Of a stretch of 64,000 nucleotides of DNA, positions 1,651 through 49,038 are shown piece after piece. A program made the translations under genes and the position numbers. The notes below the pieces were generated by a model that had not been told where the DNA came from, did no database searches, and was given only the letters and a program-made list of their open reading frames with translations. The stretch comes from Trichosphaerium sp. ATCC 40318. Lineage: Eukaryota > Protista > Tubulinea. The stretch covers positions 1-64,000 of the forward strand of contig JALMLS010000411.1 in the NCBI GenBank assembly GCA_038496445.1. Direction: 5' to 3'. Positions within the stretch are counted from its first letter, which is position 1. Every line of letters starts with the position of its first letter.

Positions 1651-2117
1651 TTACTTTTTTTCTAGCATGTCTTGCATTGCGTTTCTGAACATTTGTCTAA
1701 TGTCGCTGCGTATTAAATCGATGATAGCCTCTTTACAGAGTTCCCTTACTGCTTGTTGATCTGCTAGTGCGACTCTTTGTGGCCCACGTGATCTTGAAAT
1801 CACTGTAAGCAACGTGTTTTCTTACTTTTCGAGGGTTACATACATGTTTGGAAGAAAACTTGAATCGTCCTGTCTTTTAGAGCCCAGAGTAATAGTTGTC
1901 GTGCGTCCATGTCCCCTGGTTTGTATCGGTGACGCTTTTTGTCGGTCAGGTCGGGAACTTCGCTTGAACATGGACATGTGAGGCTCACTAGGACCACTAC
2001 ATCGATGTGTAAAGTAAGAAAGCGTGAAAGCTGTTTTAGTTCTTTTTTATAAAAAACCGGATTTACATCACTTACAGTATCTGAACAGTTGCTTCCTCTT
2101 TTAAAAATACGTAACAC
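1651..2117 (-). CDS. Hypothetical small protein (start uncertain)
   Basis: ORF 1836-2117 joins via a gtatgt...ttacag intron to an in-frame last exon LISRSRGPQRVALADQQAVRELCKEAIIDLIRSDIRQMFRNAMQDMLEKK*; no recognised family. Confidence 0.35.
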
Positions 2118-2281
2118 TTGTCGTGAAAGCGCACGTTAAAATTGAAACTAGCGCACACAACCGGATAAATTTGTGATAACTTAACTTCAATATTTGTAAA
2201 TTTCAATATGTGGTACCATCCCAAATGGACTCAAGATATAAAAATACAACCAACTTTTACTTAAAAGGAGGGAGGACATAA

Positions 2282-4720
2282 CTATGATCTCCTATCGCCG
2301 TAATTTACAGATATACGCCTGCCGAGGATGTGCACGCCATCCATATTCGCCACTGCTTTGTCTGCTGCGTCTGGGTTACTGAAATCAATAAAACCGCAAC
2401 TAGACAAACCATTCAGTTATTTTGAATAAACGTGACATTTTCTTACCCCTTAAACTCTCCATTGACGACCAAGAAACGAATGTGTTCCACTCTACCGCAC
2501 CAAGAAAAGTTATCTCGCAATATCACTTCTGTAAATTGCTCTGTGAGGCCACCCACGAATATAGTAGTACAAGCGTCATACTTGGGATGTTTATTTGGAG
2601 GTTTACCTAGTGCTTGTCAGTCACCCAAGAATATTGTGTAGAACATGCCTTTTACTGTGGCCTTGTCAGTCGCAAAGGATATGTGCATTGGCTTATCATG
2701 TAATTGATAGCCATTGAGACCAGATAGAGCTGCCGCTGAAGCAGTACCATCGTAAAATTGTACAAACCCAGATCCCATATTTACTAACTCACCTGATTGC
2801 TTTTCTTTTGGCCACCTCACTTGTTTCACTTCACCAAAGTCTGAAAACAAGGCCACGAGATCTTGTGAGGTGACAGTTTTCGCTAAATTGTTGACGTATA
2901 ACGTGTCACGTGATAATCCTGGTCTGTCTAAACGTGTAATGTGAACACATGCTACGTACTCAAAATATAAATAAAGCATACCTGTAGCTAAATAGGTTGT
3001 AGGGTCTGCACTCGGTGGCCCAGTTTGAGGCTGATACTGGGACGATATCGGTGGATTGCCTAATGTTTCTTAGTTTTTAACTATGTGGAGGAAAACTAAC
3101 CATAGTTTGTCCCTGCGCCAGCTGAAGAGAATGTCGGTGGCTGGGCGTATCCAGGTTGAGCTGGTAGATTTTGTAAAGTATTGTTAATAGCTTGTAACAA
3201 AGTCATCTGCATGTACAAGTCAGACTTAGACCTTGTTAACCGATACGCACAGTTTCTGCAGGGATGGAGTTCTGTAAGCCTGTAAATCCTGTGCTGATTG
3301 GCTGAGATGTAAAAGAAGGCGCAGGAGAGGTGTTTGTAGATGGTGCCGACATTGGCGCTACAGGTTATCAGTGTCTCACAACACATAGCTTATCGTACGT
3401 GCGTGGTGGTCTCCCCTGCTTCTTGTTCTTGGTGGATATGCAGAGTTAGCAGTGTCACCATTATAAGGCTGCCTGGTCGATTTTCTAACTTTTGAGCGAT
3501 GTCTGGCAGTGTCATCCCTATCAGAAGCGTTATTGTTATCCTCAATACTTGGTAATTCAGTCTATGCTTACTCATGTCTCTTTGAGTCATATAATGCGCT
3601 AAAGCCAACTGCCTTTGTACTAGATGGCTGAGTATTGTCGAGTTTACGGCGCTTGTATGGCCTATCTTCTCTAATCTCCTCTTTCTGCTAGAGCTCAATC
3701 GCTTAGGTTGTCAGTGGTGACATAGGGACATACCTTAGCAAACTTTACACCAAGGCGAGGAAATGCATGTGCGAGATAATCCAAAGCGGCAGTAGCCTCC
3801 TCTGGTGTTCTAAAATTTGCAAAAGCAAAATCTTTTCTTCCTGTGTTTACCGCTACAATCGCACTTTAATAAAGCCATGAACATTTAATTTTAGTACCTG
3901 TTACGGTGAATGGAGCAAGCATAAACCGAACATCTTCAGCTGGAAAGTTTGAAGGGATACCTTGAATAAATAATTTACAAGAGGCGTTAGAAGGCCTAAA
4001 ATTATACATTACTTTTTTGGAATATGCAGATAATATTATCTATCGTACACGTCCTGAGCCTCTGCTTTTATTGTGATATTTCTACCCATCTCTAAGCCAA
4101 CCTAACATGTGTTAGTTGTAAGAAATATCACAATAAAGAGTGACCTTGCTAAAGTCAACTGAATGTTGCTTGGTTTCTTGCACTATTAAATCTTGAATCA
4201 ACCTTGCAAAGCTCGTCACAGAGGAGGAATACTCCTGCAACCGCTCTCTCATTGCGTTGCCATCCTTTGATAATTTCTTAGATTGCAGTTTCGGGCTACA
4301 TAGGTGTCAACCAACACCATAATTAGACAGATAAGCACCAACCGTAGGTTCTCCAAATACGAGTATAATTTTAAAAATACAGTTTCTAGCGCGTCTGAAC
4401 GTGTGTCTACGCTACTGCCAGCCTCTTGTTGTTCGTGGCTACCTATCACGTGTAAATCGCCACGAGGAGTAACGTTTTCGCTCAACGAGATTCCTCGTTA
4501 CGTACCTAGTGCTTCTTCTGGACCCTCTGGTGTTGATGGCGCCGGATAGTGAACTGCCGCCTTGCTCTGTTGTTGCAATGTGTCACCGACTGATTTTTGC
4601 CGTGTGTCATCGATACTAAATCGTAGTGAGCGTAATGTATGGAGTTTTGGCGATATGACGAATTGTGGTCAAGTAAAACGCTGAATAAAGAAACATTTAC
4701 CCTACTATGGGCAAGGACAT
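2282..4720 (-). CDS. RNA-binding protein with three RRM domains and a low-complexity linker
   Basis: RNP motifs LFIQGIP...DFAFANF, LYVNNL...GSGFVQF, IFVGGL...KGCGFIDF after splicing; TAG stop at 2282-2284. Confidence 0.85.
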
Positions 4721-22182: not shown

Positions 22183-24332
22183 TTAAATACAGCCTGTGCA
22201 GCTGGCAAACATATTATCTTTCGATTTTACTTGTGCAGTACAGTTACATCGACGTACTGCATCGACATTGCCTATATCCATGTAATTGTGTACAACCAAA
22301 AATTGAAGATTCTTTGCAAACTTTGTGGTTTCAGAAGCTTTTGATTTGTCTGTAAGATAATCCAAAATGTTAGGTATCTTCACGCCTGGCCTAGTGCTTT
22401 CTTTTATAATCTATCAAATTATGTCAGAAGTAGAGCTGGACATATCAGATTCGTACTTTCTTCAAAGAGCGGCTGGAAGCCCAGCCTATGCCGCTTTTTC
22501 TTAATTTTGGTAATACACTTTGCATCTTTTTGTAAAACTGTTCTCCATCGAATAACTGAGTTATTGGCATTGAGGAATGCGCTGAGGTATTTATAAGACA
22601 CGTTGTGACTCTATGATAACAATAAGTTTGCATTGGAGGAAGGGGAGGGGAGTACATACGCGCAATGTGGAGAAGGTCTGATCATGTATTTGCCATAACC
22701 CAACATGGAGATAAACGGCTCAAAAGCAGATAAAATAGTGACAGGCAAAAAATCCTGTGGTGTGATTGGGTGAAGTGCCTTTGTTTCTACAACGCATTCA
22801 TAAGGGAGACGAACATAAAAAATGAAGACTTACCACAAGATACTTGTGAGACCCACTCCAAACTGGTGTATAAATCCATACAGTCCTCATAGGTATTACC
22901 TAAAAGTGGTGTGAATTATGGATTGTGACAAATTTTAGATAACAAAAAAGATGAGAAAAGGGCACCTGGTTCGAGCTCTTCTATTGTATCTGTTGGTACT
23001 GATCTTTGTGAAACAACACCTAACGGATCACCATTTTCTTTTGCTTCCCTAGCTTTGATTTTCCTAAGTTTTATATCTTGTTTGACCTTGAGCTCTGCTT
23101 GTCTCTTTTTTATCACACTAAACAATAAACACCAATTTAAGAAAACGAAACAAAAAAGAAATCTAAATTCTGTTACCTTGCCCGCACTTTCTTTACTACA
23201 TCCTGTGGTGGTCTCTCCATTACGAACTCTATTAGCCTTACAAAACCATAGCATTGACGCAATGTATCCATGAGACGGGATATACTTGGATACGGAGGCT
23301 CAATGACGAGTGTTATAATCAGTTGTATCCCGTCAAACTCTCTCAGAGTTGCTAGAGTGCTGCTTATCTCTTCTTCGCATTGTCTTTCATCGCCCTTCCT
23401 CAAGTAATATCTAAAACATACACTTGTCAACTAACTACTTAATCACATGAAAGGCCAGTATTTGTACTTGATGTTTGGAAATATTCTAGGTTTCAAAAAT
23501 GCAGAGTCATCAAGATCAGCAATGGCAGCCATTCTCTCATGTGACAAGTCAATGAGGATTGGTATCCCTCTTAATATCTCGCTTATATACAAGATCTTGG
23601 TATTGAGGACTTGCATGTCTGTAGCCAGTTTGCCTATGAGTCTCAAAATGAACTAAATGACAAAAAGTGTTAGAAGAAAATGTGACAAAACTCGACTCAA
23701 AAATTAAGTTTAGGAGTTTAACGATTACCTTGTGCGTCTTTGGATACATTGCGAGCATGTCAGTGACTTGTTTGTGTATTTCCTCATCTGTGAGGAAGCT
23801 GCCCTTGTTGAAGAGTACTAGCTCCATAACAAGTGGTAATTTATCGTGTGTTGGCGCTTTTTTGGATGTAAATTGGGATAGCTCTTCAATATCGACTGGT
23901 TGATTCGCTACAGATTGGAAATGATTACTAAAAGCAAAAATAACAAGGCGTACATGTTGAAGGTGTTTTTAGTGAGTAACTGAGCAGCTATTAACGTCAG
24001 TGCGAAGTTTCTGTACGCATTTCGAAGTTACCTTTTTAAAAAACCCTGTATTTTTGCTTACAAGCACTCGTTGTGGTCCATGGCGCTCACAACTAGCTTA
24101 TATAAGCGTGGAATTCGAAGCATCGCTGATATACTTTCAGTCCGTTTAAAGTGACGTACGGTGTGATAATCCATATGCCGGCGCCAATTTGAACAACTTC
24201 GGCGTCTTTTAGAACAGCTCCTAGCAAAAAAATCAGATAGTGCCACTAATACGACCGCTCACCTCTGCTTTCAAGTAAAGCACACCGCGGACAAATGCTG
24301 CGAGTGTCGTATAGCTTCTGAGTTGCGCTCAT
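22183..24332 (-). CDS. Tetraether-lipid-synthase (Tes/GDGT-MAS, MJ0619 family)-like protein lacking the radical-SAM CxxxCxxC motif
   Basis: N-terminal TRSICPRC...AEVV...CERHG; internal DFLPV and RPSPHCA; C-terminal HNYMDIGNVDAVRRCNC...FASCTGC. Confidence 0.6.
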
Positions 24333-24678
24333 AAATGTCAATTAATCATACGTATGACAGGAGTAATGCAAGGAGCGTAAAGTGTACTATACAATGCACT
24401 TTATTTAAATTGTCACTGAAGGTCATTGTCAAACTGGCTTAGTTGGTCCCACTCTTCAAACTCACTGCAGAGGAGCGCTCAGAGGCAACACAGTGATTAT
24501 TTAGCTTTTAACTACTGTAACTGAAAGTGCAATTCATTTAATAGCAGAACACCAAAATTTTTCGCGGTTCAAGTCTGCTCCTAATTCACTTTGATTGAAA
24601 TTTCTCGGCTTTTTATTTGGTCAACTTTTATTCGTTCATTCATTCAAAACAACTCTGTCGAACAAAGCAACTCTTCAA

Positions 24679-27310
24679 ATGTCCTCAGATAATCAGTCAT
24701 TCGGAGGCTCATGGGTACGTCTACAACTAGTTATGATTAATAACGCCAAGTACTACTTGGATTTGTTATTGCTGGGCGTAGAGAGGCTTGTATAGTTATT
24801 AATTATAATTTAGGCGGACGCTAAAGGCTCAGATGACTTCAAAAGTACTTTCAACGCTGAAGAAGAACCTAAAAAAGCGTTCGTATCGCTCTCAAGCCTC
24901 ACAAAAAAAGACGACGCAAAGTCAGGAGGTTTTGGCTTTGGAGCCTCTGATTCTGGCTCCAAAGGCACAACAACTACGTTCGGTGGCTTTGGAAAGCAAT
25001 CAGGAGGATTTGGCTTCGGTTCTACGACCTCTCCTGACAAGGAAAAAAAACCAGGTTTCGGTTTTGGCCAAAGCAGCGATAAACCAACTTCCTTTGGTGG
25101 TTTTGGTTCTACAACGACTCCAGAAAAGAAAAAACCAGGGTTTGGTTTCGATCAATCAAGCAAAGATGATAAACCGAAGCCGTTCGGCTTTGGGAGTAGC
25201 TCGTTTGGTACTGACTCAAAGTCGCCTAGCGACAAGGACAAGAAGCCATTCTCCTTTGGTAGTTCAGGCACCAGTTCATTCGGTGCAACACCAACAAAAA
25301 CTACTACATCTTCATTCACTGGTGGGTTTGGCACAAGCGACAATAAAACCCAGGATACAAAGAAAGAAAACTCATTTTCTTTTGGCGCATCAACCACTAC
25401 TTCTTTCGGTGAAAAAGATACAAAAGCAAAACCGTTCAATCCAGCTGCAGCTTCATTTACACCATCTTCTCCTACACGTGAGTAAAATGTTTTTGGTTTT
25501 TTTTTTTCGTGGAATTTTTATTTTATTAACCAATGTGCTTTTATTGCAGAAGATAAACCAAAACCAAAATATAAAAAAGCAGCAATGCCTGCAGAATATG
25601 TTGATGATGAAATAACGTGGAAAACACTAAATTTTGAGCCTAAACTAATTCAAGGTATGTAATTTCAATCAAACTTTTTTTTTTTTTTGCAATACGAAAT
25701 TAACGTTGTTGTTTAGTGTTGTACGAGATGGAATTTATAAGACCAACAATAGTCCAAGCCAAGTCCATACCAGAGATTAGAGCAGGTAAAAGTGTCGCAG
25801 TACAAGCAAAGACTGGAGAAGGCAAGACCGCCGCGTTTCTGCTAGGATCGATGTTGAGTATTGGTACGTTTACTTTTTTTTTTTACTTTCAATCAAAAGA
25901 GTAAATATGATGATGACGATGATGACACTAATCAATCTTCATAGACCAAAACATTAAAGCACCTCAAGTCCTCATAATTTCTATGACGCTGGAGCTCGCT
26001 GACCAGACGTTTAAAGTCGCCGAAAAACTGAACAAGGGAATAGGCGTATCAATTGGATTTCTTTCCACCCGCAAACACATTGTACGAATTTTATTTTTCA
26101 CTCATAGTGTTTAATTTTGAGTGACCTAACTTTTGTGTAGAATGACTCAAAAGTAGACTTGCACTCTCAATTGATAATAGCTACTCCTGGTAAATTCAAA
26201 ACGGCGTTAAAAAGGAACCTTCTTCCACAACGTGATCTTAAAACAATGATATTTGATGAAGCAGATCACATGCTCGCCGAAGGCTCCAAATTCTATGCTA
26301 TCATCAGACAAATTAGAAAAAGACTTAAAAAACTACAACTCTTGTTGTTTTCTGCAACCTTCAATGACACGGTAAGAAGAACAGCTTAAAAAACTTGGCA
26401 CACTTCTGTTTTTTTTTTTTTTTTTTCGATTTTTCACTAACTTTTGGTGTGTTAGATTAAGAAGTTTGCCATGGATTACTGGGGAGACTCACCTCATTAC
26501 ATGCTTGTACAAGAAACTAATACAACGCATGATGAATCAAGACTAATACAAATGTATTCAGTGTGCACTGTACGTGTTTATTAACTTGTAGTTTTTTTTT
26601 TTTGTTTTCTTGTTTTGTGCTAATTGAAAAAATATTAGACTGATAAAGAAAAACTGGATCAACTCGCAAAAATTTATATTGCAATGGACGTTGGAGAAGC
26701 TATAATATTCTGCAACACCAAGAGAACAGCAAACATTATCAAACAGCGCATGGGTGCTGATGGTATACACCCGCCTTTTAGCCTTACCACTAACTAACTG
26801 TTAAATTAGGACATGATCCTTCTCTTCTAACAGGTGATTTGGATCCTGCAGCTCGCCTTGCATTGTTTAGAAGATTCATTGAGGGTTAGTACACATTTAT
26901 CAAACTAAATTAACAGTTTTTCTTTCAGGTGAAACACGTATGCTTATCACTACTGATGTTTTGAGCCGTGGTATCGATAACAAGGCTGTCAGTTTAGTTG
27001 TAAACTACGACATGCCTGTCATTTACAATCAAAACGGCGCACCTAATAAGGATCTGTATATTCATCGTACTGGGCGTACAGCGCGAATGGATCTACAAGG
27101 TGTAGCCTTTTCATTCATCTCACCTGATCAACAATCTCACATTGGTACGCACCTTTTTTTTTTTTTCAAATTTATTCTTTCTCCTTTGCTTATTTGTACT
27201 TTATAGACTTCTACGAGAAAGAATTGGATATCAAGTTTAGAAAAATGCCAACATGTGATGTAGAAGACCTAATGGATATTATGGAAAAGCTGAACCTATC
27301 GACCACTTAA
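24679..27310 (+). CDS. Dbp5/DDX19-like DEAD-box RNA helicase with an N-terminal FG-repeat domain and PAM2-like motif
   Basis: Q motif PTIVQ, AKTGEGKTAAF, TPGK, DEADHML, FSATF, IIFCNTK, TDVLSRGID, VVNYDMP, YIHRTGRTAR; exon 24813-25478 encodes about 20 FG dipeptides. Confidence 0.88.
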
Positions 27311-27570
27311 AAATGTAACAAGAAACAATCGTCAAGAAAACCTTTTTTCAAAAAAAAAAAAATTTGTACTGACATGAAACGTGTAATTAAAATAAGACTT
27401 GTCAACTTCAACCATGCATCGTATTGTGTATTGTTCAAAGCATATTCTGGAAGTCCGTTTACCTGAGATTTTAAAAATGTCCTCCGCATTATTTTTACCG
27501 ACCGTTTTTTTTTCCCTGCGCATTTCTCACTTTTGAAAAATACATTTCTCAGTTTCCTGGTGCGCGTAAC

Positions 27571-30500
27571 ATGAGAAAGTCATCAAAAGCTTTTGACGAT
27601 GGCCCTGGCCGTTCGCACGTAACAAGCAAGACTAAAAAAAAAGCACGCATCAGAAACAGAAGGAACATCGACAATCGCCTCAAACATGGCCTACGACCAT
27701 ACGCAAAACCAAGAAATCCACTGAAACGCGAACTTGCTTCAGCCCCTAGTGCGTATTAATTACCCTGTCTCCATTCTAAGTCAAGCGTAGTACCTGATGT
27801 GAGGCCGCCTGAAGATCAAGAGGTATTTGTACCTATGGGTCCTCGCAGGTGCGTTACATTGCCTATTTCTTAATGCTTATACATACAGGGCGCCTATATT
27901 GGCTGCAGGCATCGATCCAGACATAGCAGATTTTCTTGACGGAAATGATGATTACGAGCCGTCTGAAATGCAAGCCTCGGAAGCACATAGAGCTGTAGAA
28001 GAGGTAAATTACCATTTTAGTGTATTTTACGTTTATGTTAATTTCGTTTTTTGTAGCTCGCGTCAATGCCTCCTAGAGATCTTCAAAACATGCTAGAAAA
28101 ATCTAAAATAGAAGAAAAAGAATACGAAAGAAAGTCTAAAGGCGTAGAGTTCTTGGAGAGTGCGTTTTACTTTTTTTTATTTTTGCAAGAATACCCAGCC
28201 TTTCAACTTGTTTTCTGACTACTTTCAAGATGAAACCAACTTGGAGCTACCACCTCACATGGTACGAGCATCTCTCAAATACTTGCTGCCAGACGTACTA
28301 ATACAGTATTAGCGCCCAAAAGCTACAGAAGATGATGACGAGAGCGAAGAAGAAGACTCTTCAGAATCCGAAACTACGAAGAATAGAGAAATGTTGGCTC
28401 GTCTTCGTGCTGAATCTAGAGCGGAACGCAAAGCAGCTAATAACACTGATGACAGTGAAGAGGAAGAAGATGATGATGAAGCTGAAGCTGAAAGAAATAG
28501 AGAGTACCAGGAAGCTGTAGCTGAAGAGCAGGAAATGCAAGAAGCTATGGAACATTTGAAGCACATTGATCCTGGATTCTACAAATACATCAAAGAGACT
28601 GATCCAGAACTCACTGAATTTACTGCTGTACCACCTGAGGATGATGAAGAGTTACCTTTCGGAGACGTAGTGCTAACAGAAGAAATGTTAGACTCATGGA
28701 AGAAAGGTTGTGTTGCAGTACGTACCAACTCCAAATTTTACTGTTTTTGGCATTTTTTTTTTTGCGTACGAGTGATGAGAAACTTTCATAAGAAGCTCGT
28801 AAGAGTATAATGCTTGATTTGTTTGATATCTGACACGCGTTTTTTTTTCAAAAAAAAAAGAAAAGAAAGATTAGAGGACCTGTTCTCAATCAATTACGAT
28901 TGAGTTACTTTTTTTATTTCAAGTATTTTTGAGTATTTTTCGAAAACTAAAAACGCGCTTTTTTTTTAGGGACAATGGCGTGCTCTTGCAAAGATTCTTT
29001 CTGCTTTCAGATCAGCTTGTCACTTGAAAGATCCTCCAGAGGAACTACAAGCACTACAATTAAAGTTTGTGATCAAAGACAGTCAAACCTACAACAGCGT
29101 CATGATGTTTTGTATTAAGCACATGCCAGCTATTTTCGGTATTTTCCTTGGTAGAAAACCAGAAAAAGAACACGTGTACGTCATCAAATCCTAAGATGTG
29201 TCTCTACACACAACTCTCTCCAACAGTGATGCTTATGTTTTTTTGTTTGTAGATTCATACCAGCCAAATACAGCAGATGGCCATCTATTCGAAAACCTGT
29301 TGTCAGTTTCTTGTCTTCACTTTTGAACATCCTCAAGTACATCGAAGACGAGTCAATGATTGTATTCATCCTAAAGAACCTCGCTGAAAGCGATGCTATA
29401 TCATGGATTGGATGCATACCTGCACTAAAGAGAGTATTCCTAAAGGTACGTACAACAAGTTTAAATGGAAATTCTGAAAAAAACGCGAAAAAACGCAAAA
29501 AAAAAAAGCGATGATTATGAAAACCCAATACGATTACTCTATTGAAGACAAAGATTTACCATAACTATCACTCTTGGCATCTGAGACTTTTTTTTTGAAT
29601 TCAATTCAAAAAACAATTGCAACTAGTAGTTTGTGTCATTTCTCACTTTTTTCGTCTCTGAAGGTCATGCTTGGTTACTGGAGTGAAGGAAGTGAACGTA
29701 TGCGTGTATTGGCATTTGTTATCATCTTGGAAATGGCAAAGAAGATTCCTTACCCTTTTATAAACGATTGCTTGCGCGTACGTTTATAATTTTTGCAAAA
29801 CAGGAAAAATCAAGTTGCTGCATGTTTTTACGTCTTCCTTTTTTGGGTGTCTGTCTAATCTTGTTTTTAGCAATCATACTACGTATACGTCAAGAACGCT
29901 AGAACGCATACACATGAGAATATGTCACGTATCACATTTATGAGAAATTGTGTTGTGGAGTTGTGCGGTGTAAGTTTTTTTTTGGTTTTTTGAAAAGTAT
30001 GTTTGTTGCTCTTTGTTCACACTCTATTTTTTTTAGATTGACTTTGCTACGACATACACCTATGTATATACCTACATTAGACAATTGACAATTGTTGTCA
30101 GAAATACATTGAAGGACAGACAGAAGGTAAGCAATCCAATTCCATTTTCAGCCTTTTTTTTAATCCAAAACCCAATGTTGTGCTAAAGATGTCTTCATTT
30201 AGAACCCTGTAAAAGCTGTCTTGAATTGGCAATTTTTCAACTCTGTACGATGCTGGGCTCACGTACTTTGTGCCTATCCAAACCAGGAAGGATTACAACT
30301 ATTGATTTACCCAATAGTGATGTTGATACAAGGTAACATCTCAACCCCTCCACTATCCAAAATATACCGTTCGTACTAACCAACCTTCTATAGCTGTATT
30401 ATCTCTTTGTGAGGGTCCACCATGGTGGCCAATCCGCCTGCAATACATTAGACTATTGAACCACATTGGAGCAACAAATGACGCCATTATTAGCGCACAG

Positions 30501-33892: not shown

Positions 33893-36563
33893 ATGAGACT
33901 CACTCGTTTCACTAGAGGGTCTTCTAAATCGTACGCATACTACTACTGTTCGTCTTGTTCACTACAAATAGGGGAACTAAGAGCTCTAAATGGCTCAAGA
34001 CGCTTATTGTTGGAGGGTTAGCTGCTGGAGTTGTAGGAGCGTCTGTACTCCTTCAAAGTACGTTTTGTCTGTTGTTATAACCGCTTTTTTAACTAATCGT
34101 GTTCACAGCTGCTTATGCTGATGCTGACGAAGAAGGCGAAGATAAACCAAAATTAGTTGTCCTTGGTACATTATCAGTACAACACAAAAGTTGCTAATTC
34201 AGCGTAAAAAGGGAGTGGATGGGCTTCTACAGGCCTTTTAAAACAGCTAGGTGATTCATACGATGTTTCAGTCGTGTCACCCCGTACGTCGCGCCACGTC
34301 ACGGCTAACTACTCACACTGCGTAGGAAACTACTTTTTATTTACTCCTCTGCTTCCTTGTGTGACAGTTGGCTCACTAGAGGCAAGAACGCACGTAATTC
34401 ATTTTATTCCAAACGTACTCGTCTAACTCACAGGACAGCATAACACAACCAATCCGAGATTTTTTGTATGGAAAGAATACAGCAAAGTTTTATGAGGCTG
34501 CCTGCTACGACCTTGATGTTTCGAACAACACAGTGCGCTGTAGGGACGCCTCAGCAGTTGCTGGTGTTGCTGCTGATTTTACACTGCCGTATGACTATCT
34601 AGTTATGGCTGTTGGTTCAGTCAACAACACGTTTGGGTGCCCTGGTGTTGAAGAAAATGCCAGTTTCTTGAAGAGTGTAGAAGGTAGCCAAACAACATTA
34701 GAGAAGCTCTAACATGTACTTTTAGATGCTATTGGTATAAGGAAACAGATCATTGACTGCTTCGAAACAGCTAATAATCCTGGGTTAACTACAAAGGTAC
34801 AAACAGATTCCTACTTTTTTGCAACAATGACGCACATTATTTTTGTCCACGTGTTTTTTTGGCTAATACACTGTTTTCAAAGGAGCGAGAAGACATGCTT
34901 AGTTTTGTAGTTGTTGGAGGAGGTCCTACTGGCGTAGAGTATGCTGCAGAGCTCAGTGACTTTGTTCATGAAGATCTAAAGAAATGTAAGTATTACTGCA
35001 CAAGTCACGTGTCACGATTCGTTTTGTTTTGTTTTTATTTGAAGTGTACTTGATGTATCTTCGATTTACACTTTATGCTTAGTTTTCCCTGACTTGATTC
35101 CACATGTTAAAGTGCATTTGATTCAGAGTGGATCACATATTCTGAATACTTTTGATGAGAAAATAAGTATGTACACTGAGAATAAATTCGAACGTGACAG
35201 GATTAAAGTCATGACAAACCACAGGTAACCGCTATTTCTCATTATCACCCCACTGCTTTATTGAATATTGATGTTAACTATAATTTGTGTAGAGTACACG
35301 CAGTGAATAAAGACAACGTGACAGCGTTCTGTAAGGTACAACAACAACAAGGACTGGACATAAACAAAAAAATTAAACCAAGTCAAGTTTTTTCTTACCT
35401 TCAAATAGAAAACAAAGACGGAGAGTGCTATACCTTTCGGTCTTTGTGTTTGGTCCACAGGCGTGAAACCAAATCCTTTGGTTCAAAAAATAAAGTACGT
35501 TTATTAAGTTACGTGTCTCTAAGCGTTTGTTAACCATTTGAAAAAGAGATTCGATGCCACTTGTACAACGCAACAGAAACGGTTTATTGGTAACCATTGA
35601 ACTAACTTTTGCTTTTTGTCCATTAATACTTTTACTACAAGGTTGATGACCATCTTCTTGTGAAAGGAACAAAAAATGTATACGCTGTTGGGTACTTACT
35701 TTGATCTGTTTTTTTCTTTTTTTTTTGGTAAAAAACGGGATCATTCATTTGTTCCGATTTTACCTGTTCACTTTTTCATTAAATTTATGCATTGATTATA
35801 GTGATTGTGCTGTCTTGGATACACCAAAACTTCATGACCATCTTATTGAATTATTCCAAAACGCTGACGCGGATAAAAATAACGCACTAGATCGTACAGA
35901 GTTTGAAAAACTTTTGAAAGATGTAAACAAGACGTATCCTCAGCTAGCGACATATAGCAACAAAGTTGAAGATCTCTTCGGCAGAGCAGATACAAATAAT
36001 GATGGCGTTCTTTCATTAGATGAATTTGAAGAAATCCTTAGAGATGCTGATAAATACCTTAAAGTTCTTCCAACAGTACGTCCTATGCACCCAAAATTGG
36101 ACATCCCGTTTTTGTTGTTTTGAACTAATTCAACGTCCTTAGACTGCACAAGTTGCCTCTCAAGAGGGATCGTACATGGGAAAATCACTAAATGCAATAG
36201 CGAATGGCAGAGAAGCAAAACCTTTTGTCTATCACCACATGGGATCACTTGCGTATGTTGTCATGATAATGGATTTTTTCTTTTATTGATACACGTGTTT
36301 TGAGACTAACATATCCAAAAAGCTATGTTGGTAAGTCCGCTGTTGCTGAACTACCTGGAGATATCAAGGCAAATGGATTCTGGGTTTGGTGGTTATGGAG
36401 GGGTATATACTGGTCTAAACAGTTCTCATTCAAGGCGATGTACATGCTCTCTGTGGATTGGACAAGAGGTAACGAGAATTAACCATAATGTTATTGTGAT
36501 TATCATCTCTAATGCTTTTGTTTTTTAGCACTATTCCTTGGGCGTGACACTTCGAGATTTTAA
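33893..36563 (+). CDS. External type-II NAD(P)H dehydrogenase with EF-hands (NDB-type)
   Basis: [48 protein letters not shown] loops [13 protein letters not shown] and [21 protein letters not shown]. Confidence 0.94.
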
Positions 36564-40986: not shown

Positions 40987-43082
40987 TTATTGTTTTGCTT
41001 CCTCTTCTTTGTCTTCTTTTTCGTCGACTTCCATTTTGTCTGCTTTAGGTTCTTCTGCAGGTTTTGAGGCAGGTTTCTACAAAAGTTATGTTAATTGAAA
41101 AAAAAATGAAAGTAAAAGTAAAACAGAGTCCATGTGAAGTAATACGTACCTCTTTCTTCTCCATCTCGCCTAGGCGTGTGAACAAGTTGGCGAATGTCTT
41201 CTTATCCTTTTTCTTCTGTTGATTGATTCTTTGTTGCAAGCGTTGTAAAGCACGTTTGACTTCCTTGTTATCAGGATCGAGTTTCAAAGCACTAATTGCA
41301 AAAAATTAATCACCAAAAAAACAATCAAAAAGATGATAAATGATTTGGACGTTACGTTTTGAGATCAGTTCTAGCATCATCCCATTTATCAACAGCAATG
41401 TATGTTTGACCTCTTCTGTATAGTGCCTTAATATTATTGGCATCTTGTTCTAATACCTAGCGACAGGGGTAAGAAACTGCAGTACAAACGGAGCAAAAAA
41501 AAAAAAAAAAAAAAAATGAAGCATAAAGTTCTTCGCACCTTCTTGCAATGCTCGAGGACCTTGGCGTGGTCTTTTTTACGCATGAATACGGCAGCCATAT
41601 TGTTGTTGCAAGGCACCTTAATCTTTTCTTTAGCCTCAGCCTTTTCTTCATCCTTCAAATCATTGTCGTATTGAAAGAACTTTACGGCAACTTCGTATTT
41701 CTTCAAGGCACGATCGAATTTTTTCTGTTTGAATAATTCATTACCTTGCAGACGACGTTTCATAGCAGCTTCCATTTTATCAGAAAATTCTTTCATCTCC
41801 CAAGCTTCTTTCTCCTAAAACAAAAAAAAAATCAGAAAACAGCTAACATCAAAGAGGGAAGGGCGTTAAAACACAATTTGTTGGTGCCCAAATAAAAGTT
41901 GCACGTGACATGCATAACCAAGATTTTTAAGTGAAAAAAAAAAGTATTGGCAACACGTGAAATCATCAAGTAGTTGGGTAGTGGTACATACACGTGTGAA
42001 CTCTACGAGTTCGATAGTGTAAACAAGTGTTGCATTTGCAGGAATACCAAGTGCTTCTTCGCCAGCCTCGCCATAAGCATAGCTTGGTTGAATAGTGAGA
42101 ATTGCTTTTTCTCCTTGTTTCATGCTCTCCAAACCAACTTCAACACCACGGACTACTTGCTCTAAAAAAAACGAGTAAATAAATTAAATCAATCAAAAAA
42201 TTTCATGAGATGTATGTATTTCATTTTGTTTACCATCTCCAAGAATAACCTCAAAGTTTTCTCTCTCTTCGATTACTTTATCATTGCACTCGAGTTTAAG
42301 GTTTAGTTTACACTTGGTTTCGAATTTTGGTGTTTGATAGGCTTCCTTTGATCCCTCTACAAGTGTCTTCTTCATAACACCGCCATCCTAATGATAATAT
42401 AAGCAACGAGTAGCCAAGAATGTAAAATTGTTTTCAAAAAGAAAAAAAAACCATTTGAGTCGCGTTTGGGTTAGGTGGTAGGTAGGCTTGAGGAGGTGGG
42501 TTTGTTTGAAAGAAAATAAACATACATTTGACAAATCCCGTTCGTTGGAGAAAGAGACTAATTCTACTTCAAATACGAGTGTAGCGTTTTTAGGGATTTT
42601 AGGAGGGGATCCATTTTCGCCGTAAGCGTACTCAGGCGCCAAGGTGAATTTGGCGATTTCTCCCTTCTTCATGGTGGCTACACCTTGGTCCCAGCCCTTA
42701 ATGACGCGGCCTTGGCCGATTGGAAACTCAAAGAGTGTCCCTCTATCTCTTGAAGAGTCGAATTTGGTGCCATCGAGCAGGGTACCGACGTAGTGCACTG
42801 ATTGGTTGTAAGTAGGGCGTTGTTAGATATTTGTAGCCTATCAAAACAAAAACTTTGCAAGCAGCATTGTAGGCGTTTATAAAGTTCTTGGGCGGTACAA
42901 AATATGTAGTTATTGCGCGGAAACAGAAAAAAAAATGTACCTTTGACCTCTGAGCCGTTTATTGGCCTCTCGAAACCCTCTCCCTCCTTGATAATCTCTT
43001 TTAATATTCCTCCATCATTATTGATGTCCTCAGGACCTTTGGAGTCTCCTGCTTTTGCTAAGTTATCTTGGGTATCGGCCAT
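40987..43082 (-). CDS. FKBP-type PPIase with TPR domain (FKBP4/5/ROF-like Hsp90 co-chaperone)
   Basis: [19 protein letters not shown]...VIKGWD, second FKBP domain, TPR GNELFK...KALYRRG. Confidence 0.95.
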
Positions 43083-47905: not shown

Positions 47906-49038
47906 TTACATTACATAGCGGTAAGTTACTAAACAACATATTAGACAATGCACCAACAATAAAAAAAATTCATAGAGAAACATGGGTGTATTAACGTACT
48001 GTAATGGCCTGCTGTTACACTCTCTCTGATAATCTTTACAACCTATCAACAGCATTATTAGGTAAAAAACAATGAATAACATAACAATGAAGATAAGTAG
48101 GTTGAACCTAAAACTTTTTGACGCAAATGGAGTAAAACACTGTAGCCCCGAATGCGAATGAAAATTTATATAACTTAGCGAATCACTATCATACCTGACC
48201 CCGCACAAGTCCAAAATAACGTGAAACAGGATCTGTTGCAAGAACACGAGGTAACTGACCTTCTTGAATTTTACTAGTGATACAACGTTAAAAACAAAAA
48301 AACCCAAAAGATAACAACGATCAGACTTTTTCACGTACTGTTTTTGGAGCAGTTCTTTCTTCTCGTGTCTTGTCAATACAATATGTCTTGGCACAGATTC
48401 ATGTCTTGTAACATTAATAACAAGCTCTGCTTCTCGAAAATGCTCAATAAAGATCTTTGATCGTCTCATTTTGACAATGTGCTAATTGGTCGATGACACA
48501 TGTCAGTTTCTCAATTTTTACAAAAAACAAATTTGTTTACCTGCTTTACACTTGGCGTGAGAGGTCCTGCGCTTATCATTATGCACCTTTTCAAGCCTTT
48601 TTCGCGTATAATCTCGTAACACTATTTTTACAATGTTAACTACAGTAAATTGGTTGCATTGAGCGAGTGTAGGTCACCTCTTTCATTTTATCAGCGCCAA
48701 CTTTGACAGTGTCAATATAAAATATCATAATGCCCATATCTGGTTCAGGATGCGTGTATGTTGTTGGTAGAGCTCCACGACTAAGTTTTACGGTTAAAAA
48801 TTACTATAATTACTTTATAATGGTTAAATAAGCTTACAGTATATCGTTACCGCCGTATTGTTGCATAAATCGTTCTAAACGGATTCTTTTCTCGTCTTCT
48901 GGAACTATATAGCCTCTTTGCTCATTAGCGGTACAAGACTACAATATATACGCTAAATTACCTGTCCAATAGCATTTCTACAACGGTTTTGTATATTTTG
49001 TACAAATGAACCCCTAGACCCTCGTATATATTGGCCAT
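47906..49038 (-). CDS. RPB5: RNA polymerase I/II/III shared subunit RPB5
   Basis: [62 protein letters not shown]...TYRYV. Confidence 0.93.

Follow-up and report, generated by a model that had tools for sequence, protein, structure and literature searches.

How a Dbp5/DDX19-type helicase is positioned close to the phenylalanine-glycine (FG) repeats and export receptors of the nuclear pore, and how exported messenger ribonucleoproteins (mRNPs) acquire cytoplasmic poly(A)-binding protein (PABP), are active questions. Canonical Dbp5/DDX19 proteins such as those of yeast and human (about 480 residues) lack FG repeats, and the propeller of Nup159/Nup214 places them next to such repeats in trans; a gene of the amoeba Trichosphaerium sp. 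ATCC 40318 raises the question of whether the same components can be joined in cis. This gene occupies positions 24679-27310 (+ strand) of the DNA that we analyzed, namely the first 64,000 nucleotides of contig JALMLS010000411.1 (assembly GCA_038496445.1), referred to here as the window. A preliminary description drawn from the DNA letters had proposed that the locus encodes a single chain in which an FG-repeat domain and a PAM2 motif precede a Dbp5/DDX19-like DEAD-box core. On balance, we favor the reading that the protein is a diverged Dbp5/DDX19-family ATPase whose N-terminal extension has been expanded, between a SWAD motif and the core, into a nucleoporin-type FG domain of about 200 amino acids followed by a PAM2-like peptide, with a putative role in the export of messenger RNA (mRNA).

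The gene is intact and transcribed, and its FG exon and helicase core reside on one mRNA. Three-frame translation of positions 24300-27700 yields a model of 11 exons whose coding sequence of 1,953 nt specifies 650 amino acids with no internal stop; the ten introns all follow the GT..AG rule and measure 45-99 nt. Transcript evidence consists of contigs of public sequencing runs aligned to positions 24500-27500, from which expression level and transcript ends can be read approximately. Single contigs of 1,998 nt (run X1) and 2,028 nt (run X5) have all ten introns spliced out exactly as modeled, a 913-nt contig of run X2 joins exons 1-4, and a declared RNA sequencing (RNA-seq) library, run X4, joins exons 1 and 2, so that splicing of intron 1 is seen in four runs. 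Contigs begin at about 24643-24660 and stop near 27331-27333, indicating that the mRNA is essentially the coding sequence flanked by short untranslated regions (UTRs), of which the 5' one (24643-24678, + strand) contains no upstream ATG.

Intron 2 (25478-25549) separates the FG exon from the helicase exons. RNA-seq across an intron at about 25479-25549 had been called for in the preliminary description, and both the 1,998-nt and the 2,028-nt contig contain the splice, which is in frame. That the two parts are transcribed separately is ruled out, since exon 2 is joined to helicase exons in contigs of three runs. The FG exon itself, proposed at 24813-25478, proves to be exon 2 at 24814-25477, within 1 nt of that proposal, and its true frame is indeed missing from the list of open reading frames (ORFs), which holds for this region only an out-of-frame ORF of 260 amino acids at 24833-25615. 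One transcript thus joins the FG domain, the PAM2-like peptide and the DEAD-box core, as had been predicted. The strains represented in the public runs are more than 99% identical; relative to the window they differ at nine sites in the gene. Seven of these differences are synonymous, and P92T and T175N, the only ones that alter the protein, fall in FG spacers. Within the FG exon the substitutions divide into four synonymous and two non-synonymous, leaving the FG dipeptides and the PAM2-like peptide untouched.

The N-terminal arm is encoded by the first two exons. Exon 1 (24679-24714, + strand; 12 codons including the start) supplies the first FG dipeptide (24700-24705) as well as the initial half of the SWAD motif, and exon 2 (221 codons plus 1 nt, + strand) encodes a disordered FG-repeat domain and then the PAM2-like peptide. 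All 20 FG dipeptides of the spliced protein fall within residues 1-212, the other 438 residues being free of them, and 19 belong to the array proper (residues 52-211; 24931-25410, + strand), where they are separated by K/D/S/T spacers; the earlier count of about 20, arranged as GFGFG, FSFG and SFG units with such spacers, was therefore accurate. By flavor, there are five GGFG, four FGFG, two PGFG, two FSFG and four (S/T)SFG units. Residues 45-215 contain 13.5% F, 19% G, 33% S+T, 23% K/D/E and no R, and residues 1-235 include only four L/I/V/M residues and one W, leaving F as nearly the sole hydrophobic residue. When the first 250 residues were shuffled 20,000 times with their composition preserved, no shuffle attained 20 FG dipeptides.

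Database searches, family scans and structure predictions were run exon by exon, and the spliced 650-residue model was used in local BLAST, HMMER, alignments and trees. Single-sequence AlphaFold prediction assigns the FG exon no secondary structure and a mean predicted local distance difference test score of 47. A Pfam scan of exon 2 gave no match, Nucleoporin_FG included. In the ESM Atlas the nearest named cluster is Nucleoporin_FG, at a score of 0.86 that lies under the reliable range, and a Nup42 family cluster appears at rank 9; both are treated as leads only. A recent tandem DNA repeat was considered as the origin of the exon and rejected, Tandem Repeats Finder having returned no tandem array in the FG DNA even at a score of 30. 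Judged from its residues, the make-up of the arm is that of a nucleoporin FG domain. [quoted passage not shown] Among nucleoporin FG domains, those with charged spacers are the less cohesive type.

The arm is preceded by a short element that links the protein to other members of the family. SWAD lies at residues 11-14 (24709-24819, + strand, interrupted by intron 1), and the same W-A-(D/L)-acidic motif occurs in 11 of 45 full-length Dbp5/DDX19 representatives, among them the jakobid Andalucia, the red alga Timspurckia and several unlabeled representatives, and in vertebrate and mollusc DDX19; the proteins that bear it in their first 60 residues include P0076, P0099, P0021, P0050, P0103, P0126, P0133 and P0142. 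In human DDX19 the same N-terminal segment is the SLIP1-binding motif, which docks MIF4G proteins and has been stated to be restricted to metazoans (bioRxiv 10.64898/2026.07.31.742013). Its presence in non-animal Dbp5s raises the possibility that this motif, or some forerunner, predates metazoans. The DDX19 N-terminal extension as a whole is flexible (PMC5998080) and acts as a docking platform for MIF4G-domain cofactors (bioRxiv 10.64898/2026.07.31.742013), and among the proteins that we fetched its length and composition vary freely. Several long database entries labeled 'DDX19' (Camelus, 819 and 685 amino acids; Galemys, 1,014; Auanema, 1,149, with extra Pfam domains) look like models fused to a neighboring gene, as does a Vipera entry of the family that is named for another gene; because of such apparent fusions (P0175, P0180, P0298, P0315 and P0370), protein length is a poor guide to N-terminal extensions.

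The remainder of the protein is a complete DEAD-box core, with Pfam DEAD and Helicase_C domains spanning exons 4-10, and all exons that follow the FG exon likewise lie on the + strand. Exon 3 (25550-25654) encodes a basic linker and the start of RecA1, before the Q motif. Exon 4 (25717-25863; Pfam DEAD) contains the Q motif FIRPTIVQ (25734-25757) and motif I AKTGEGKT (25806-25829); it is without the Dbp5-specific PPQNLIAQSQSG-type segment, and divergence is unevenly spread along the protein. Exon 5 (25945-26081), a weak match in the PDB search, carries motif Ia MTLELA (25983-26000), and exon 6 (26141-26371; Pfam DEAD, 1.6e-12) carries motif Ib TPGK, motif II DEAD (26255-26266), a basic helix and motif III SAT (26351-26359). 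That helix, RQIRKRLKK, sits at the position of the DDX19 segment SIRIQRM in an alignment that is ambiguous there; two arginines of the DDX19 segment contact Nup214. RecA1 ends in exon 7 (26456-26569), which also encodes the inter-domain linker, and RecA2 begins in exon 8 (26639-26762) with motif IV IIFCNT (26702-26719) and continues through exon 9 (26810-26884). Exon 10 (26929-27144; Pfam Helicase_C) comprises motif V TTDVLSRGID (26949-26978), a Dbp5-type extended loop (27012-27059) and motif VI HRTGRTAR (27063-27086), and exon 11 (27207-27310) encodes the C-terminal tail and the stop codon (27308-27310). Motifs Ia and VI read in the diverged forms given in the preliminary description, and motif I, DEAD, SAT and motif V are intact.

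Which DEAD-box family this core belongs to can be read from profile scores and from local signatures. A Dbp5 hidden Markov model (HMM) scores the core at 370 bits and an eIF4A HMM, the sole alternative profile compared, at 194 bits, a difference of +176. Known Dbp5s on long branches show margins of +110 to +240, for instance +201 in Gregarina and +110 in a microsporidian, and unrelated DEAD-box proteins margins of +43 to +67. In pairwise comparison, the best Dbp5s reach 242 and 224 bits vs 177 bits for the best eIF4A. The PDB searches with exons 6, 8 and 10 all return yeast Dbp5 as the best match, followed by DDX25 and DDX19B, above eIF4A, and for exon 10 the only chains that align without an eight-residue gap are those of Dbp5, DDX19 and DDX25. 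This agrees with the spacing from RGxD in motif V to HRxGR in motif VI, which is 28 residues here and 26-28 in most Dbp5s, vs 20 in eIF4A, DeaD and others. In addition, of the 63 alignment columns with 90% conservation or more across 42 Dbp5s, the amoeba protein keeps 52, and most of the changes are conservative. Together, the profile scores and signatures support membership in the Dbp5/DDX19/DDX25 family, and in this respect the core is as the preliminary description had it. The amoeba protein accordingly resembles canonical Dbp5/DDX19 in the family of its core and in its ATPase motifs, in the extended loop ahead of motif VI and in having a flexible N-terminal extension with a SWAD-type motif, and departs from it in holding its FG repeats in cis.

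Searches for closer relatives placed the protein at some distance from anything in the collections covered. An exhaustive HMMER search with exon 10 among 1.84 billion representatives gave no match above 60% identity over about 65 amino acids, its relatives lying at roughly 40-60% identity over the exon. Since the matches had been pre-selected by this Dbp5-specific exon, eIF4A sequences were fetched and the profiles compared as described above. The best full-length relatives share 31-37% identity with the core, and the named ones are DDX19/DBP5 proteins (Joint Genome Institute names; Andalucia DBP5); a Cryptosporidium 'Dbp5p-like' protein stands among the neighbors of one relative, P0079. A metagenome scan with exon 10 produced one locus, Ga0193952_1001520 2108-3055, with 30% identity to the amoeba model, a GC content of 34% and no FG-rich frame, which was set aside as an unrelated intronless DEAD-box gene.

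A maximum-likelihood (ML) tree of 58 rows (LG+C20+F+G4 with posterior mean site frequencies, quick search) places the amoeba protein inside the Dbp5 group, with a Shimodaira-Hasegawa-like approximate likelihood ratio test (SH-aLRT) value of 94-95, adjoining Gregarina. Gregarina is itself long-branched, and we therefore treat the pairing as long-branch attraction, not as a true sister relationship; the misplacement of the microsporidian Dbp5 among the outgroups is attributed to the same cause.

A DDX19 protein with an FG arm of its own is not without precedent. The novelty implied by the preliminary description does not stand, the architecture having been published for Caenorhabditis elegans DDX-19 (PMC8311347, PMC3063144), and an earlier account from another lineage was among the grounds for refutation that the preliminary description itself had named. 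That protein, of 1,022 amino acids and 21 FG dipeptides (at most 11 per 200 amino acids), is among the most FG-rich of the worm (PMC8311347 Table 1), has been called an FG-containing mRNA export factor (PMC3063144), and assembles into D granules that sit immediately over nuclear pores (bioRxiv 10.1101/2024.03.25.586584; PMC12050070). Nematode orthologues carry 5-12 FG dipeptides, and among about 148 full-length family members that we fetched, only nematode proteins (Plectus, 12; filarial worms, 5-8) have more than four in the N-terminus. As in the amoeba protein, the nematode Dbp5/DDX19 core follows a long disordered FG-repeat extension. The amoeba extension, however, is shorter and about twice as dense (20 FG in about 210 amino acids), is built of GFGFG/SFG units with K/D spacers and is followed by a PAM2-like peptide; its host is a unicellular organism without a germline, and the two cores are about 30-31% identical.

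Nematode DDX-19 nests within animal DDX19 in the ML tree (SH-aLRT 99-100), with the amoeba protein elsewhere, and the other members fetched are without FG arms, so that separate gain is the simplest reading; a clade of amoeba plus nematode is not rejected by the approximately unbiased (AU) test (p = 0.19). From the taxonomy of the hosts and the FG-less state of other animal DDX19s, the amoeba arm was most likely gained separately from that of nematode DDX-19, and the protein is most likely a second case of a known FG-plus-DDX19 design and not a new kind. Further FG-bearing DEAD-box helicases of C. elegans, GLH-1/2/4 and RDE-12 (PMC8311347), likewise combine a DEAD-box core with FG/GFGG repeats at the N-terminus, and these repeats tether them to the FG environment near the pore (PMC3063144, PMC12050070). 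They differ in belonging to other subfamilies (Vasa/DDX4-like and others), in having zinc knuckles and in acting in an animal germline.

What follows the FG array in the amoeba protein has, to judge from our literature search, not been described on this helicase family. A PAM2-motif peptide had been reported at about 25429-25467, and KPFNPAAASFTPS is indeed located there; within it, FNPAAASFTP (residues 220-229; 25435-25464, + strand) fits the loose PAM2 pattern, which calls, within disordered sequence, for [LFP]-[NS]-[PIVTAFL]-x-A-x-x-[FY]-x-[PYLF]. It is the sole match to the pattern across the six frames of the window. When the first 250 residues are shuffled, the loose pattern arises in 0.5% of cases, and a stricter pattern, which was defined post hoc after the motif had been seen, in 0.002%. 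From these matches, the peptide is a good candidate docking motif for the MLLE domain of PABP. Our literature search found no description of PAM2 on Dbp5/DDX19, nor of an FG arm combined with a PAM2-like peptide on a DDX19-type helicase.

PAM2-pattern matches also occur in two other N-termini of the Dbp5 family, vs 0.15 expected over 283 extensions. One is LSAEAKPFVP at residues 20-29 of P0173, an alveolate-like EukProt transcript, and the other FNVNAPSFVP at residues 19-28 of P0322, the DDX19 of Aphelenchoides avenae; P0142 has a near match at residues 79-88. The motif is absent from the nearest available relatives of P0173 and P0322, which points to sporadic gain or to chance. A concrete functional parallel for the PAM2 reading comes from metazoans, where PAIP1 binds the N-terminal motif of DDX19, bridges it to PABPC1 and promotes the exchange of PABPN1 for PABPC1 at the pore (bioRxiv 10.64898/2026.07.31.742013). 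There, as would be the case in the amoeba, an N-terminal extension connects the export helicase with cytoplasmic poly(A)-binding protein and a PAM2-MLLE contact is the PABP-binding element; in the metazoan system, however, the PAM2 belongs to the adaptor PAIP1, whose MIF4G domain binds DDX19, whereas in the amoeba the candidate is on the helicase itself.

These features suggest a route by which the protein could act. The FG arm would concentrate the helicase in the FG phase of the pore or on an export receptor of the Mex67/NXF1 type, and the core, with its ATPase motifs intact, would then act in the manner of Dbp5 and remodel mRNPs as they emerge. Cytoplasmic PABP may be bound, through its MLLE domain, by the PAM2-like peptide, which would couple termination of export to PABP on the poly(A) tail, a link that runs in trans through PAIP1 in metazoans and would here be in cis. 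That localization of Dbp5 at the pore is sufficient for export is reported in PMC7553267. [quoted passage not shown] Given the PAM2-like peptides in two unrelated Dbp5-family N-termini, a direct or adaptor-mediated link between Dbp5 and PABP could recur among eukaryotes, the metazoan PAIP1 route being one form of it. We regard this broader proposal as unlikely.

Several observations weigh against the reading of the protein as a Dbp5-family export factor with a functional arm. The core is unusually diverged, with 35% identity at best to any Dbp5 vs 30-32% to eIF4A, whereas Dbp5s fetched from different supergroups are 45-55% identical to each other. Its terminal branch is the longest in the tree (2.51; median, 0.76), and the AU test does not reject a grouping with the outgroups (p = 0.48, log-likelihood difference 2.1). 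Because tree and AU tests leave its placement loose, assignment to the family rests on the profile scores and signatures. Exon 4, with the Q motif and motif I, is generic: its best PDB matches are DbpA, DeaD and Has1, no Dbp5/DDX19 chain falls among the top 60, and it reads IRAGKSVAVQAKTGEGKT in place of the Dbp5-type PPQNLIAQSQSGTGKT segment, with a two-residue alignment gap. The RFG that follows motif VI has been lost, and the non-conservative changes are an I-to-T substitution in motif VI and the FG beyond it. The libraries searched yielded no relative closer than about 35% identity against which conservation of the FG arm or the PAM2-like peptide might be judged. By our estimate, the six frames of 64 kb would contain roughly one chance match to the loose PAM2 pattern, and the PAM2-like peptide opens with the K-P-F prefix of the FG units and may be a degenerate repeat unit. 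Finally, the genome may encode a canonical Dbp5 elsewhere, which would then carry out export.

The last point leads to the alternative that survives best, which we consider a minority possibility to be taken seriously. Here, the protein would be a specialized paralogue, as the preliminary description had suggested from the diverged motifs Ia and VI, and would work outside bulk export, its FG arm acting as a sticker into perinuclear or cytoplasmic ribonucleoprotein condensates in the manner of nematode GLH-1/2/4, RDE-12 and DDX-19 granules, with a canonical Dbp5 terminating export. FG-bearing DEAD-box helicases of C. elegans are condensate components (PMC8311347, PMC3063144, bioRxiv 10.1101/2024.03.25.586584). 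Extreme divergence of the core, as seen in its branch length, its low identity, the altered surroundings of motifs Ia and VI and the generic exon for the Q motif and motif I, suits such a paralogue, and a PAM2 would be equally fit for a role on cytoplasmic mRNPs. Against this, no second Dbp5 gene has come to light, although no search of the rest of the genome was aimed at one, the ancestral SWAD N-terminus and the Dbp5 loop have been kept, as in an orthologue, and the charged spacers of the arm (23% K/D/E) are of the less cohesive FG type.

A second alternative holds that the protein is an unremarkable Dbp5 orthologue, which Nup159/Nup214 and Gle1 recruit in trans as they do elsewhere, and in which the FG stretch is a functionless low-complexity expansion and the PAM2-like peptide an accident. 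The free variation of Dbp5 N-terminal extensions in length and composition allows for this, as do the chance expectation for loose PAM2 matches in the window and the failure of the nearest relatives of the two other motif-bearing Dbp5s to keep theirs; the FG DNA, which is not a recent tandem array, makes no repeat-expansion mechanism visible either way. The arm itself makes the proposal improbable, however: an array of 20 FG dipeptides in which scarcely any hydrophobic residue but F occurs lies far above what composition would give by chance, comparable N-termini with more than four FG are otherwise confined to nematode DDX-19s among the members fetched, and strain substitutions in the FG exon, four synonymous and two non-synonymous, spare every FG. 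Very improbable, finally, is the idea that the core belongs to a lineage-specific DEAD-box group, eIF4A-like or other, that resembles Dbp5 in part of RecA2 only, an idea to which the unrejected grouping with outgroups, the modest pairwise margin over eIF4A and the generic exon 4 lend themselves, but which is opposed by a profile difference within the range of true long-branch Dbp5s, by an extended loop before motif VI that is common to Dbp5, DDX19 and DDX25 alone, by the SWAD motif and by the position inside the family in the ML tree.

Features around and between the exons are listed here for completeness. Uninterrupted T runs of about 10-17 nt occur in six of the ten introns (25478-25549, 25655-25716, 25864-25944, 26372-26455, 26570-26638 and 27145-27206), and an A13 run lies in the 3' flank of the gene (27350-27362). 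Among the large ORFs of the window are ordinary housekeeping neighbors, namely an Rpb5 C-terminal domain (47909-48469, - strand), an FKBP-type prolyl isomerase (42391-42798, - strand; E-value 8e-33) and an EF-hand pair (35701-36120, + strand).

If the protein is merely a diverged paralogue with a low-complexity tail, the locus amounts to a minor annotation note. If, instead, our favored reading of an FG-armed export helicase is true, an FG arm, a PABP-docking peptide and a Dbp5-type helicase joined in cis, in a single-celled host far from nematodes, would form a compact test case for two ideas: that what counts for Dbp5 is its proximity to FG repeats, which is consistent with PMC7553267, and that cells in general need to couple export with the loading of PABP. 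The comparison with nematodes suggests that an FG-armed DDX19 arose more than once, and an arrangement gained more than once would be a useful one and not a nematode oddity.

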